Source: Pelomyxa schiedti
Lineage: Eukaryota > Protista > Evosea
Direction: 5' to 3'
Length of the DNA stretch: 64,000 nucleotides
Assembly (NCBI GenBank): GCA_020536535.1
Contig: JAHLWZ010000794.1
Coordinates: forward strand, 62,001 to 126,000
In this document: in pieces, positions 6,319 through 48,198 of the stretch
How positions within the stretch are numbered: the stretch's first letter is position 1
How the letters are laid out: every line of letters begins with the position of its first letter
Notes under the pieces: generated by a model
What the model saw: only the letters and a program-made list of their open reading frames with translations
What the model was told of the DNA's origin: nothing
Database searches by the model: none
Position numbers and translations under genes: made by a program

Positions 6319-6834
6319 GGCAGCAACACCAATGAGAAATCATAAACCGAAATTTGCTTTTAATAATGGAACAAAGTCTAGTTTTGGGGCTATCGTTCAG
6401 GGCCAATATCCTTTTAGGCGGAGGGAGCAGTCACAGCCCAGTACCTTAAGGTATTAGTGAGTTGCCCTTAAAAAGCGTTCAAAATGAACGCTCTAATCGG
6501 TTTCTAATTGTTTCTGATGATATCTAATCCATGCCAACCCCCCAGACTCGCCTTGGTCTTACCGCAACAACCAGGCAGTGTTGTCCTCACCTCTATGGTT
6601 CTGGAGGGTAGGTCGGGGAAGTCCACCTTGGTTGGGAGCCTGCTCTGTTAGCTGAACAACTGGTATTTTTTTCCCCTCTGTGAGGAGGGTATCCGGATGA
6701 GCACCGAACTGCGCAACCTGACGTGGCCTGTTATGACCGCGGACACATGTAGAGTCGTTTACCCTCAAAACCGGCGGTACGGGTTGGAGGGGTGCCACAG
6801 AGGCAGTGAGAGAGGAGGGGGTGGGGGGGAGCAA

Positions 6835-6936
6835 TACACCCTGTGGAGGGGTGTAGGCACACCTTGCATGGGCACCCTTTGGAAGGATGCACATGTGGGG
6901 ATGGGGGTGGGGATACACTCTGTGGAAGGGTGTATC
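6835..6936 (+). other. Cluster of three related stem-loops with NTGGA loops, interleaved with G-tracts
   Basis: TACACCCT-GTGGA-GGGGTGTA (6835-6855), GCACCCT-TTGGA-AGGATGC (6872-6890) and GATACACTCT-GTGGA-AGGGTGTATC (6912-6936), intergenic. Confidence 0.6.
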
Positions 6937-7688
6937 ATTCACACGCACCTGGCACCCTGTTTATAGAACCGCACACAGCACTTGCCCCCCCACACACGCC
7001 TGCATCCCACACACCTGCACCCCTCCTCCCTCGTTCTCCCTCCATCTCCGGCGTTCTCCCTCGTTCTCCCACTCCTTTCCTCTCACCCACTACACAATGT
7101 AATGATCGTTGTGCTTCGTGTGTAGTATCTCGGTGGTGTTCGCACTCCGTTTTTGTATCAAAAAGGAAAAAAAATCGGTTCTTTAGAAGTGTGGGGGGAG
7201 GCCGTCGAATTTTTTCTAAGCTAAAACCTCGCGGTCTGGGATTGAAAAAATTTAGCCAAATGGCCTGTGCAGCAACATGCTTTTTAGCAGCATGGACCAT
7301 GACTTGCTAGCTATTACTAAGATGTTTCAGGCATCAACATCAGGTGAACCGCATCTTGAGTGCTGTCCCACTTGCCCATACAACAGTTGTTGAGCCAGAA
7401 AAAGGACTACTGTGGAACTATAGGGTGTTGCACCAATGGTCTGACAGGGATCTGCTGTTGAAGCACTTGCAACTGATGTTGCAGTGTTGGTGTGACCCAA
7501 CAGATCTGATCCGCCAGTGGTGATCAAAACCAACAATTTCTCGGTTTGTCCGTTGACAGTGAATTTACGACCAAAGTCTTAAGTTCTAATTTCCAGCCTC
7601 CCAGTTGCAGTTACGCCCACCCAAGTTAGGAAAGTTGGTTTTAGACAAACAGCTGGAGTATTTTGTGGCTTAGAAACAACTTTACGAG

Positions 7689-42500: not shown

Positions 42501-44012
42501 CACACAAATCACTTTGGCAGAGACTTCTCATCATTTTTTCAAAAGCTGGAACTTTCTATAATACTGTTAGGTGACCTGGCGATCGAAGTGGGCAAACAGA
42601 CCTTCAAGATAGTCCTTTTGTGGTGTTCCCTCTCTTCAGGTGTTACAAACTGTTCTTGAAATTCGTTCTTCCTGATTTTTGTTTTTTGTTGAGGGTTTGA
42701 ACCTGCTGTAGAACAAGGGGGAGCATAAGAGGATTTTTCAACATGGTGAGAACTATGATGGTGATGCCGAGCGTGATGACGGACTTTTGTATTCTTGGAT
42801 GAGGGAGACTGATGTGGCCTGGAATGTCTGTGGTGTGATTGATTTGTAGTTCCTTGGTGTTCGGGGTGACCCACTCTCTGATGCTCTGGTTGTTGTCCCG
42901 TGGGAGGTCTATGCTTGTGTCGCCGGTGTGTGGAAGGCTTTCCCTCAATTCTAATTACAAGGCCTTTGGGTAGATCTGGCAACAAAGTGGAAAGCTCAGC
43001 AGTGTGCGGCTCCAAAGTGGATTGGGACACATCTTCCGCATGTTCAACGCCCACAGCGTCCGGTACAGAATCAATTTTAGGAGTACCACACACTGTGGAT
43101 ATTGCTGCCTCAGAGTGTATTGATCTGGGGCAATCTTCAGTATGACATGTCGAAGAAGAGACATCTGGAAGTGACAGCGGTGTGTGAGGAGATGCCAGTG
43201 AATGACTTGTCCCACACGATGATTCGATGTTCTTATTACCACATTGTTCTGGATTAGTTGCTGTCTGACATTGCTCCAATGAGACTGATGAGTACAAAAT
43301 TACAGTATTAATGTCACTCGGAAGTTGTGAAGATGCAGTTTGTACAGGGATGATTTCTGGTTGTGCTAACTCTTCGGCAGAATGCAAAAGCACTTGAATG
43401 TCCTGGATTGCCTTTGTGGGTAACAATTGCATAGGTGATGTGTTGCAGTGCTCTGCACAATCTGTGAGAGCCTTTTCTACTGGCGATTTTTCGGCAAGAG
43501 AGGTGGGGTTATTGATACTTGGTACTTGTGTGGAAGTGTTGCCAGAAGTTACCACAGTTGTTATGGACTTGAACATCTGGTCTTGCTGTTTGCGCTGTGA
43601 CAGAGTATTGGCAGCGGCCAAGAATTGCTCTGGCTTGCAAGCCATATCTGAAGCAAACTTGCACCACAAAGTGAACATAAAATCCTCTGTAGGCCCATAT
43701 TATTGAGTACTCTTATTCCCTCCTCCCCCCCAGATACTGCAACACCAACAAGCCAATGCCCAACAACAGATTAAAATTGTATGGGAAAGTTACAATACCA
43801 TCGAAATGAGTTGATGCCGACAAAGGGTCCCCTGATCCAGGTCCATTTCCACTCGCTACGGCGACGCTCGAAGATGACGACGCGGACGATACGTCTCGTT
43901 TCTCAGGCCGTGTGGTACGCGCACCAACGTGGTCAGCCGCCACGCCAACAGCAGTAGCAGGACATCCCCCCTGTGCCCTCCGCAGCCCACACACTAGTCC
44001 CAGATTGATCAT
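39600..44012 (-). CDS. Large multi-exon hypothetical protein with low-complexity His/Ser/Pro-rich N-terminal region
   Basis: 379-aa exon 42539-43678 followed by a chain of minus-strand coding-like exons bounded by GT-AG. No family recognised and both ends are approximate. Confidence 0.55.
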
Positions 44013-44774
44013 GGACCACCGTCAATGCCCCAACCCTCAAGATCTAGATCCGGTGCACCTCTCGCGTACCCAACGGGTATTTTTTTTTTTTTCTCCAACT
44101 CGCATGAGCGGCCAAAATGAAACGAGGCGTTTTTTGAAGATGCCACTACCATCAAAAGGTTGGTGACATGACACCGTTGGCTATGGTACTTCACCACCAG
44201 AAGGCATTTCAGACGCTCCCAGGGCACAGAGAGCAAGGACCATTTCTGCTCCATTTTTCCAGGGAAGGTGGAGTCCCAAAGCTCAAACGTCAATAAAGAG
44301 ATGTGTTTACAAGAGAAAACAGTTGCTTTATTTAAAAACACGGGTAAACAACAGACTGGGTGCGAGGATGGGTTGACAAAGAGCGGAAGAGACCCCAAGA
44401 GGCCACGAAGAGCCGCAAGAACCGCGAAGAGCCGGAAATGAGCAGTTGTCATCAGCTTATCTGGGGAAAAGTAAGTGTTGTTTATTGGTGGAGTTGAATT
44501 CACCTGAGTATTTGTTCCGTCGGGGGGTACTCTTCACCAGAGAGTGTGTCCGTATATGTGAAGGGAAGTCAGTGGAGTCGAAATTAATAGAATGGGCACT
44601 TACTTGGGGGTTTGAGACCCCCCGGAGGGTTCCTCCTGGCCTGCCTGCCTGCCTGCCTACCTGTGTCTGTGTTGGAGAGGAGTGGGAGTGTTCTTACGAA
44701 ATGAAGTCAGCCAAAGCAGGACACAGCCAAGTCAGCGGGAGTCAGAGTCAGAGTGAGGGGGGGAATGAATGATT

Positions 44775-45081
44775 TCCAGTCCAGCGTGACAAAATGTCGT
44801 CAAACTTATATTGACTGGACTGGAGGTGAATCCAGAGCATCACAAAATGTCGTGACACGTTCTGGGATTCGAGGCAGTGATCCGGTCCTGACAAAATGTC
44901 GTCACAGAAACACGGAAGACTGAACTGGTTTGACAAAATGTCGTCACCACCAGCCAAATGGGAATAACCCAACCCAGCCCAACCTTGACTGAATGTCGTC
45001 ACCGGTGGGCTGGGCAATCCGGGTCGAGACTGAATGTCGTCAACAAACCCGCTTTGGACTGACTGAATGTCGTCACGTCCA
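44775..45081 (+). ncRNA. Putative structured RNA: seven tandem hairpins with conserved apical TGAC-(AAAA/TGAA)TGTC-GTCA motif
   Basis: 16-nt repeats start at 44787, 44840, 44889, 44931, 44986, 45027 and 45060. Each is flanked by its own complementary arms. Copy 2 has a compensatory TCAC/GTGA change. Strand is inferred weakly from G-U pairs. The repeat structure is certain, RNA status is not. Confidence 0.55.
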
Positions 45082-46146
45082 GTATTGATATGCTGATTCC
45101 CTCCCCCCCTCCTTCCAGCTGCTGCAGCAGAATACGGCGCTCAGCATCTCGATTGAAATGCACCTATATCTGCACGAAAAAAAAAACAAAAAAACAAAAA
45201 AAGAATGGATGGATACTGAAGAAAAACCCAAAACCTATAACCCAAGTTATTATTATTATTATTATAAGAGTATAATAACCCAAAACAAACGTGGGAGAGT
45301 CAGAGCCCGCTCATGTCACGAGAGAGTCACCAAAACCAAACTCAGCAAACCCCCAGCCCCCAACAAAACACCACCACCAGCCTCATCCACTCCCAGACTC
45401 ACAGCACCAGGGCGCGCAAAAAAGGAGACCTGCACGGGGAAAAAAACAAAAAAACACGACACGACAAAGGATAAAAAAACCACGAGACAAAGGATAAAAA
45501 AAACAAGAGGGAATACGTGATATCACAGCAACCGAGGAGCGCATCTAGCCGGTCACGCACCCACGCACACCCCAACGACATGCTCTTGACTGTTTTTATT
45601 TTAATTTTGAAAAAAAGATCTCTTTCTCGGACTTAGGCGTGGAAGTTCAAGTTCAATGTGCAACTATTCTTGGGGCCTGACGCCAATAACGAGTTCAGAA
45701 TTCTAAAACAACCGAAAGAGAGAAGTCTTGGTGACAACCTCTACAACCTTGGAACTGTTCCATCAATGCCACACAGCGGATTGCGTACTCACACCTGTTA
45801 CAAGGAGAACGCGAAAGCAAACGAAAAAAAAAAAAAAAAGCAGATCTGGCGAATGTGTCGAAGGTGACTGCAAGTGTCGAAAAGCCAAAAACTTGACAGT
45901 GGTGCCCTGCCGATGATGGAGCAAGAACTGCCAGTTGTTGGTTGATGAGCGCTGAATCTCAGACTGGATCATCTGCTGCTTCCAAGTTTGAATCTTGTGC
46001 TTTTTAGTTATTGCGAGATCGGTGACTCACGGTCGTCAACGAGAAATCCTAAGAAAAAACGAGTAACAACACAAAAAGTAAAATACAGCCACAAACACTC
46101 GGGGGTCGGTAGTCAGTGCAGTGTAGGAAGCCATCGTTCGTCCCAC

Positions 46147-48198
46147 ATGCAGCAACAAAACTTCCCTCTTGTCAAGATCTCGATTGATGTGTCACCCAGT
46201 GGCGCGGGGTCTGACCCTTTCGCTCGTGTCACACAACATGGATCTACCAGTGTCGCCGCATTTGCCTCCGAAGTCGTTTCTCTGTTGGCAAAGTGGGGCG
46301 TCGCCCCGCCTTCATTGTCTTTCTCATTTGAACCATCGGCGTGGTCTCCCAGCGCCGCCGCAGTTGCTGCTGAGGTGGACAAGCAATTGCGGGAATACGG
46401 AAGAACCAACCCTGGTGTCGCCAGGGTGCCCATTATGCAGGTTTGTGTGCACTCTCTGGTCTAATAAACCTATTCCCTGAACTACACATATTTGTGGATG
46501 TTATTTACACACAAGGCTATCTCTTATGCTTTTCTCCCTTTTTTTCTGCTTATAGATGGCAGAGGCTACAGTAGGTTGCCCTGAAGCTTATTTCCTTGGC
46601 GATCAGGCCGACTTCTTAACTGGTGTGCGCAACTTCCTTGTTAATATCATGGAGGACAGACTCTGCCCAAATGGTGTCCAAGTGACAAACACCTGGTTGG
46701 TTCAGCTACTTACTGCCAGGATGAAGGTTTTTACATCTAGACAACCCTTCTTTGTAAGGATTTTCTAGATCATTAAGTTCATTGGGGCTCATCCCGAGAT
46801 TACTTCCATCAAACCCAAGCACCCAGTTTTTATTACAGGTCTACCAAGGAGCGGGATGACCCTTCTGCATTAGTATTTCTTAGTGCGTTCCAAACTTTCA
46901 ATTAACCCGATGCTAAGCCTCATGGGATCTAACCCTGACGCCCGAGCTCTTCGATTTTTTGAAATGACATGTAACATTTCAGTTTAGCTATAACTGGGTA
47001 TAACTAAACCATATTGTTTTCCAATAGATATGAGTGACCCAACAAAAGTTGTATCCACTTCACAGCAGTTAGCTTCCGATCCTCGAATTAACGAAGTACT
47101 TGTTAGGTATTGCTAAGTCATGACACTCACGACCATAGGTCAGCACAAACTGCGCTGAACTGGAGAAATTTTTCCCTGGCTATTTCTCGCGAATTGCGCA
47201 ATCACACTTTGCACACCCTTCGGCAATTGGTACATAGGACAGAGTAACTTGTTGGGCTGACTACCGTGAAGAGGAGGAAATTGGTATCATGTTCTACAAC
47301 TTCTGCTTCATGTTGCATATGGGCATGGCGAAACCTGCATTCACGGAATGGTTGCAGACTACTCAAACAAAAGGACATATTTACCGATTCCTGAGAGCAT
47401 TTATGCAAATGATTCAGAGGGTACTACAGAGAAGTTAGGCTAATTTAGTGACTCCACCTTTGCAGGGTGGTACATGGGAGTACAGCCACTGGGTTCTAAA
47501 GGCCCCTCTCCATATGCTTTACATCAATCAGCTTGTTGAGGAATTTGGTGATGACTGCCAAATTGTGGTAATGCACCGTAATCCAATCCATGCAATTCCT
47601 TCGCAATGCCGCTTAGTTGAAAGCTGGGTTTCTGATTTCTTCCAACCTGGATCATGTGATAGGCAATACATTGGCAGGTTTGTGCACTTGAAGTCTGTCC
47701 AGTTTTGATGGGTTTGTTCAGGCAGCAGATGGTTTTGTACAGAAAAGCGGTTGACACCATGATGGAGTGGGAGGCCAGAACAAATCCGGCCAAGTATATT
47801 AATGTCACCTATGAAGAGGTCTCTATTCCGATATTACCCCTACTCTTTTGAACTGAAAAATATGTACAGCTCATGCTTGACCCAATTGCTTGTGTGCAAA
47901 AAATATATCGTCACTTTGGCCTGCAAGCACCGTAAGTTCCCGTAACTTTGTCATCCTATCCTGACATTTTCGGAAATCCAGGAACGTTGACCTGCGACTT
48001 CTCACTTACACAATGCAACACAATCCCCAGACCAAATTCACCCGTGCCACGTGCGTAGTTCTCCAGCCCAATTGCGGAGTCAAATTAACCACAGCCACCA
48101 GGTACACCCCAGAAATGTATGGTCTCACCGCCGACGCCATTCAACAAGAATTTGCACCCTACGTTGGGTGGGCCACACAGAGAGGAATGTTACTCTAA
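46147..48198 (+). CDS. Sulfotransferase (Sulfotransfer_3-type), multi-exon
   Basis: PVFITGLPRSGMTLLH (5'-PSB loop), HWVLKAPLH, IVVMHRNP..AIPS (3'-PB), YEE|LMLDPIACVQKIYRHFGL, RYTPEMYGL. Confidence 0.88.

Follow-up and report, generated by a model that had tools for sequence, protein, structure and literature searches.

CsrB and RsmZ are bacterial sponge RNAs in which many short hairpins present a conserved GGA loop on unrelated stems within one non-coding RNA. The iron-responsive element combines a CAGUGN loop with a 5-bp upper stem and a bulged C, while microRNA clusters are built as spliced, polyadenylated hosts that lack an open reading frame (ORF) and carry tandem hairpins. It is rare for a structured long non-coding RNA (lncRNA) to have a clearly repeated protein-binding unit, and the structures of such RNAs are usually disputed. 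For the A-repeat of Xist, more repeats are reported to give more binding and more silencing (PMC6917512). EhSINE1 of Entamoeba is present in 393 copies, has target-site duplications, and moves with a LINE (PMC2996970). Here, we describe an array from Pelomyxa schiedti that resembles CsrB and RsmZ in placing many conserved-loop hairpins on unrelated stems in one putative non-coding RNA, and we ask how far this and other comparisons hold.

Positions given below refer to the window, that is, the whole 64,000-nt stretch of DNA analyzed, except where they follow the name of another locus. A 16-nt motif recurs seven times in it, starting at 44787, 44840, 44889, 44931, 44986, 45027, and 45060, with start-to-start spacings of 53, 49, 42, 55, 41, and 33 nt. 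Checked against the sequence, the letters of the motif, its spacings, and the seven unit-specific flanking stems with their linkers are as a preliminary description of this DNA had reported them. One-mismatch versions of the motif elsewhere are isolated, lack the stems, and occur at background frequency. The array spans 44775 to 45081 on the minus strand, and its order along the putative RNA is as follows: H7 (45055 to 45081, loop GACAUUCA) comes first, followed by H6 (45020 to 45051), whose upper stem has only 3 bp; H5 (44973 to 45014, loop GACAUUCA); H4 (44925 to 44953, loop GACAUUUU); H3 (44875 to 44922), which has a U·G pair in the window versus C-G in other copies; H2 (44828 to 44870); and H1 (44775 to 44824), with a lower stem of 10 bp. 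The hairpins measure 27 to 50 nt, with stems of 9 to 15 bp, and the linkers between them are short and variable. Elsewhere in the window, at 6590 to 6940 upstream of a large gene, other short hairpins form a cluster; these are G-rich, have TGGA in their loops, and share no motif with the seven-hairpin array.

Folding against dinucleotide shuffles, which the preliminary description had asked for, gave the array z-scores of -5.1 on the plus strand and -6.6 on the minus strand. Because the motif is itself palindromic, stricter controls were run. When the motifs were held fixed and each spacer was shuffled in place, flank complementarity exceeded that of the shuffled sequences (z = -5.3 on the plus strand and -6.4 on the minus strand), and 0 of 400 such shuffles were as stable as the native array. 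The native spacer order was also the best of 720 permutations of the intact spacers on both strands; thus, the arms around a motif match each other and not the arms of other units. After GC correction, the array was the most stably folding 320-nt tile among the 398 in the window. Swapping fixed 20-nt flanks unit by unit ranked the own flank best in three of seven cases, but neighboring stems confound this test, and we therefore rely on the whole-array permutation. The hairpin array is real, with a structure beyond chance.

The preliminary description recognized no known family, and our searches bear this out. At the gathering threshold, Rfam returned no match in the window; a lower threshold yielded only weak chance matches, none of them on the hairpin array, with a CrcZ match far below threshold elsewhere in the surrounding element. 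A tRNA/tmRNA search returned none. Outside this genome, no relatives were found in viral, metagenome, and prokaryotic genome collections (two-motif pattern), in phage (BLAST), or in viral contigs (core pattern). One metagenome match (L069) is not a homolog: it is a bacterial REP-like palindrome pair, in which the meeting of two inverted units creates the 16-mer. The REP-like palindromes of this sequence (L069:1-110 and 420-480) surround a gene resembling a GIY-YIG nuclease gene, and the 16-mer is there by chance.

Comparison with named RNA classes was likewise negative. A resemblance to a stretch of 7SK is without Rfam support. SECIS elements have an RUGA opposite a GA quartet, a long helix II, and an AAR apex; here, GUGAC is present but pairs in Watson-Crick fashion with GUCA over an 8-nt loop. 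For a cluster of box C/D or H/ACA snoRNAs, the minus strand offers a C-like RUGACGA, but no CUGA closes the units and there are no ACA tails. As for a CRISPR array, the spacers of 17 to 39 nt pair across the repeat, and the host genome is eukaryotic and intron-rich. The array is undescribed in Rfam and in the literature searched, and it would be a variant of the multivalent hairpin RNA theme.

The array is also the most conserved part of the element that contains it. Among the paralogs of this one assembly, several of which lie at contig ends, substitutions between copies amount to 3 to 6% in the array versus 11 to 30% in the other parts of the element (P = 4e-13 and 4e-8 by Fisher's test). 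Variable columns within the array make up 6 of 166 paired positions versus 10 of 71 unpaired, gap-free positions (P = 0.008), and indels are confined to the linkers, except for one 1-nt loop deletion. Taken together, the native spacer order, the low divergence of the array, and the spared paired positions support the earlier claim of selection on single-stranded structure, and purifying selection on structure explains this pattern better than gene conversion does. According to a neutral account, the inverted repeats arose by template switching, and the copies stayed similar through gene conversion. The flanks of two copies (C498 and C253) do contain short inverted rearrangements and a patchwork of repeats, which speaks for such a by-product, yet conversion offers no reason for paired positions to be spared when the linkers change, and the account leaves the same tip on seven unrelated stems unexplained; it is already disfavored, and we consider it highly unlikely. 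The stems had further been called individually covarying. The stems themselves stand, but true covariation is slight. The outer pair of H6 varies among copies, once on both sides, and this is the one two-sided change between copies; a G-C to C-G swap between units, in the upper stem of H2, is the sole compensatory change in that stem and falls short of significance on its own (78 of 500 shuffles). With array relatives found in one genome only, phylogenetic support is absent.

The putative RNA is likely the minus strand, with loops GACAUUUU and GACAUUCA, given the conserved GT/AG splice sites, the acceptors with pyrimidine tracts, and the AATAAA described below. In each of the three full arrays, the minus strand also folds better than the plus strand. 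Two internal stem changes are of the G·U type only when read on the minus strand. We find it very doubtful that the plus strand is the functional RNA instead, as an antisense transcript with loops that present an AUG in A-rich surroundings, or that both strands pair together. The plus strand does fold, its loops are AAAAUGUC or UGAAUGUC, and three pairs (two terminal-pair changes and one H2 pair) are G·U only there; against this stand the splice and polyadenylation signals, the fold energy, and a paralogous array on contig C313, in which U·G or G·U pairs occur on one common sense in 10 of 10 units. The fact that both strands fold, and that the motif is a spaced palindrome with a TGACG half-site, would also suit an element acting as DNA, either through single-stranded or cruciform hairpins or as clustered TGAC-N8-GTCA sites to which a dimeric protein binds. 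Yet double-stranded binding leaves the unit-specific flank pairing unexplained, and the G·U-type changes and transcript signals fit RNA, which makes a DNA-level role most improbable.

On the putative minus-strand RNA, each unit reads as a lower stem, a 5' bulge, a UGAC/GUCA helix, and a GACAUU-containing loop. The bulged G is adjacent to the helix in five of seven units, and the loop is GACAUUCA in the first three units and GACAUUUU in the last four. The shared design of the preliminary description (lower stem, 4-bp upper stem, and 8-nt loop) is retained, except that its 3'-biased bulge becomes 5'-biased on the likely minus-strand RNA. The iron-responsive element is similar in having a lower stem, a single 5' bulge, a short upper stem, and a conserved loop; in contrast, the Pelomyxa units have a bulged G, a 4-bp upper stem, and an 8-nt GACAUU loop, and they stand seven in tandem in a putative non-coding gene.

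The signals surrounding the array on the minus strand can be arranged as a gene. A promoter-like block (45590 to 45680) is common to copies C805 and C142, and its AGATCT and T-run part also occurs in C313 and C612; it may serve as the promoter. Putative intron 1 (45430 to 45516, 87 nt) runs from GT through a pyrimidine tract to CAG, with the GT/AG kept in C805 and C142 and the donor context found also in C313 and C612. Downstream, putative intron 2 (45170 to 45216, 47 nt) and putative intron 3 (45119 to 45163, 45 nt, with a weak acceptor) would enclose a 6-nt microexon (45164 to 45169) that is kept in C805 and C1938 with one change. The putative internal exon that bears the array covers about 420 nt (44698 to 45118) and has no frame conserved between copies. 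It would be followed by putative intron 4 (44661 to 44697, 37 nt, GTAAG donor) and a putative last intron (44461 to 44603, 143 nt) with a GTAAG donor, a branch-like ACTTAC, a pyrimidine-CAG acceptor, and an internal CAG-GT junction near 44504; the core of this last intron is common to both subfamilies of the element. An AATAAA polyadenylation-like signal (44327 to 44332) is kept, and similarity among most copies stops about 30 nt downstream of it.

At all six putative donors, GT is kept in every copy that covers the site, compared with 21 of 75 background GT dinucleotides, a count biased by our having picked the sites by eye partly for their conservation. The acceptors keep their AG, except for one that is shifted to the next CAG, and T-rich tracts with CAG acceptors are found on the minus sense in nearly all copies. 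Weak donors of the GTTTGT and GTAACA types are also present in the neighboring gene, as read by eye. The conserved splice and polyadenylation signals sought in an RNA polymerase II (Pol II) lncRNA are present at eye-picked sites, and the kept GT, AG, and AATAAA are suggestive of a Pol II gene on the minus strand. EhslncRNA of Entamoeba is a polyadenylated lncRNA of an archamoeba, as is proposed for the Pelomyxa RNA; it is a 2.6-kb member of a kinase gene family, and the abstract on it describes no hairpin array (PMC4895391).

With exons compared singly, the putative array exon has 130 open codons in one register in the window, 123 in another register in C1938, and at most 67 in C805. Which frame is open varies from copy to copy, with indels causing shifts, in keeping with the earlier statement that the array is not a protein repeat. 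In some diverged paralogs (L045:4760-4900 and L046:5030-5230), the putative last exon reads as an acidic, EAEAEADSADEDDY-like open frame, which is closed or shifted in other copies. This frame may hint at descent from a coding gene.

A search of the genome (52.4 Mb in 5337 contigs, with short introns) places the array within a dispersed multicopy element of about 1.4 kb (44290 to 45680, minus strand), a putative Pol II non-coding gene; similarity to copy C498 extends to 44194. The preliminary description saw the array but missed this membership, as well as the minus-strand splice and polyadenylation signals and the differing arrays of the paralogs. The element occupies about 10 dispersed loci, about five of which belong to the subfamily of the window and about five to a diverged subfamily. 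When searched with surrounding DNA, the copies of the first subfamily (C805, C1938 joined to C142, and the cut starts of C498 and C253) are 77 to 84% identical. Two more sequences, C4115 and C3175, are 95 to 97% identical to C805, flank included, and probably represent an allele of it. Complete seven-hairpin arrays are found in the window (C794), C805, and C1938. The diverged subfamily (C313, C612, C940, a second place on C498, and C1515) has the 3' core in common, and the 5' part of the element is also present in C313 and C612. A covariance model of the unit matched only type-A copies, a fragment on C595, and loci chosen for carrying the motif. The C595 sequence (L049:5100-5190) is an isolated fragment in which the 5' arm of H3 is fused to the 3' arm of H1 via one motif, as recombination between motifs would produce.

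On one side of the array is a minus-strand reading frame starting near 44012, and on the other, beyond 46000, is a sulfotransferase-like gene on the plus strand; the latter (46228 to 48198, intron-rich) is arranged head-to-head with the element. Two copies have a patchwork of short inverted duplications downstream, at L042:830-960 and 1800-1910 on C498 and at L043:400-560 on C253. C498 further contains a 60-nt piece of the diverged subfamily between 20-nt inverted repeats, and behind each of its two copies lies a 614-bp block, the two blocks being 95% identical.

Dispersal of this kind raises the question of mobility. The flanks of the copies are unrelated, the 3' boundary is common, and the copies on C498 and C1515 are 5'-truncated, as in mobile elements, which counts against an lncRNA reading. 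A non-autonomous mobile element would account for these features, its transcript or displaced strand using the hairpins as a cis signal by which a partner retroelement or a rolling-circle protein could recognize, export, or package it; the central repeat cassette is variable and is accompanied by a short CCTG-type microsatellite (44638 to 44658, plus strand) that varies between copies, and the genome holds 86 reverse-transcriptase (RT) and four Helitron-domain matches. The Helitron-domain matches are on contigs C1445, C668, and C4466. However, the six copies tested showed neither target-site duplications nor subterminal inverted repeats nor poly(A) tails, the intron signals are retained, the 5' boundary is not sharp, and no RT- or Helitron-bearing contig was among those matched by the element's DNA at the level of a BLAST search. 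We regard a mobile element as unlikely.

Features of specific classes of mobile element were looked for as well. For a Penelope-like element or retrozyme, there was no hammerhead core (CUGANGA..GAAA) on either strand in 10 copies and no Rfam match. For an EhSINE-like SINE, six copies had no word of at least 7 nt common across their ends and no tail, and RT contigs gave no match. For a HINE/DINE-1 Helentron derivative, the longest inverted word between the ends was 8 nt or none in six copies. EhSINE1 (PMC2996970) is also a dispersed, non-coding archamoeba repeat with a variable internal repeat number, whereas the Pelomyxa element has about 10 loci, no duplication, and kept intron signals. Similarly, DINE-1/HINE Helentrons (PMC4067079) are dispersed and non-coding, with central repeats, a microsatellite, and no target-site change, but the Pelomyxa element is without their 12- to 15-bp subterminal inverted repeats, 3' palindrome, and TT target, and has splice and poly(A) signals.

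In the slot that holds the seven hairpins, some paralogs carry different arrays. C313 (L046:4040-4620) has 10 hairpins of two types, with a basal GUC/GAC helix and UGACG on the 3' side; C940 (L047:5145-5299) has three tandem 51-nt units with one hairpin each; and C612 has an array remnant. The letters of the C313 helix are those of the upper stem in the window with the connection reversed, at the base versus the apex of the hairpin, and the two arrays may present one recognition element. A tentative extension, possible though on balance improbable, is that these genes form a new, modular lncRNA class: a spliced, polyadenylated chassis with swapped hairpin cassettes (seven apex-motif units, 10 base-motif units in C313, and three units in C940), each a multivalent aptamer tuning an RNA-binding protein. 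If so, a eukaryote would be using CsrB-like sponge arrays as a gene family.

Our preferred reading, to which we give about an even chance, is a multicopy Pol II lncRNA bearing seven copies of one protein-binding stem-loop, through which it would serve a single RNA-binding protein as decoy or scaffold. In this reading, transcription and its strand, splicing, the binding of a protein, and the role as decoy or scaffold are inferred, while the motif, its structure beyond chance, the multicopy element, purifying selection on the array, and the lack of a conserved frame are shown. The full copies of a small family of Pol II non-coding genes would be transcribed from what is the minus strand in the window; the primary transcript would lose about five short introns and be polyadenylated after the AATAAA. 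The large internal exon would then fold into seven hairpins, each with its own lower-stem sequence, a small 5' bulge (usually G), a UGAC/GUCA helix, and a GACAUU-containing loop, the stem sequences differing so that each unit folds alone. A constant tip on freely changing stems is the pattern expected if a protein recognizes the apex, and with seven sites on a single RNA, binding would be multivalent. These seven copies of one site would bind several molecules of one RNA-binding protein at once, and the bound protein would be titrated by a decoy or clustered on a scaffold.

The preliminary description had also offered single-stranded DNA for a nuclease, a small-RNA precursor, and a leader array; all three are weaker than a multivalent protein-binding RNA. 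In the precursor model, RNase III or a similar enzyme would cut the transcript to single hairpins, yielding unit small RNAs. The putative gene layout is like that of microRNA cluster hosts, and the short, variable linkers would suit such processing. Still, stems of 9 to 15 bp in hairpins of 27 to 50 nt are too short for 21-nt duplexes, conservation lies at the tip and not in an arm, and there are no snoRNA boxes and no Rfam match; we thus judge a precursor to be quite unlikely. For the decoy or scaffold RNA, the unit is short, recurs on seven independent stems, and is kept across paralogs, so that a pull-down with one 30-nt hairpin and a loop mutant could name the partner. If confirmed, the finding would add an lncRNA family of defined structure to a group of amoebae for which we found almost none described, and cassette exchange among paralogs would show how such RNAs get re-targeted.

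The closest parallels are RNAs that repeat a binding unit. In contrast to CsrB and RsmZ, the Pelomyxa array is eukaryotic, apparently spliced and polyadenylated, and without an Rfam match, and the GGA loop motif is absent, the array loops being GACAUU (GACAUUUU/GACAUUCA) or its complement. The Xist A-repeat (PMC6917512) and the roX tandem stem-loops resemble the proposed RNA in that a Pol II lncRNA repeats one conserved unit about seven times. However, the repeats of Xist are 26-mers that are nearly identical, are separated by unpaired U/A-rich linkers, and have a disputed structure (PMC6917512), whereas the Pelomyxa units share only 16 nt, have spacers that form the stems, are multicopy and dispersed, and have no sequence relation to these RNAs. 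By analogy, the array would work like CsrB or the Xist A-repeat in principle, while being a member of neither.
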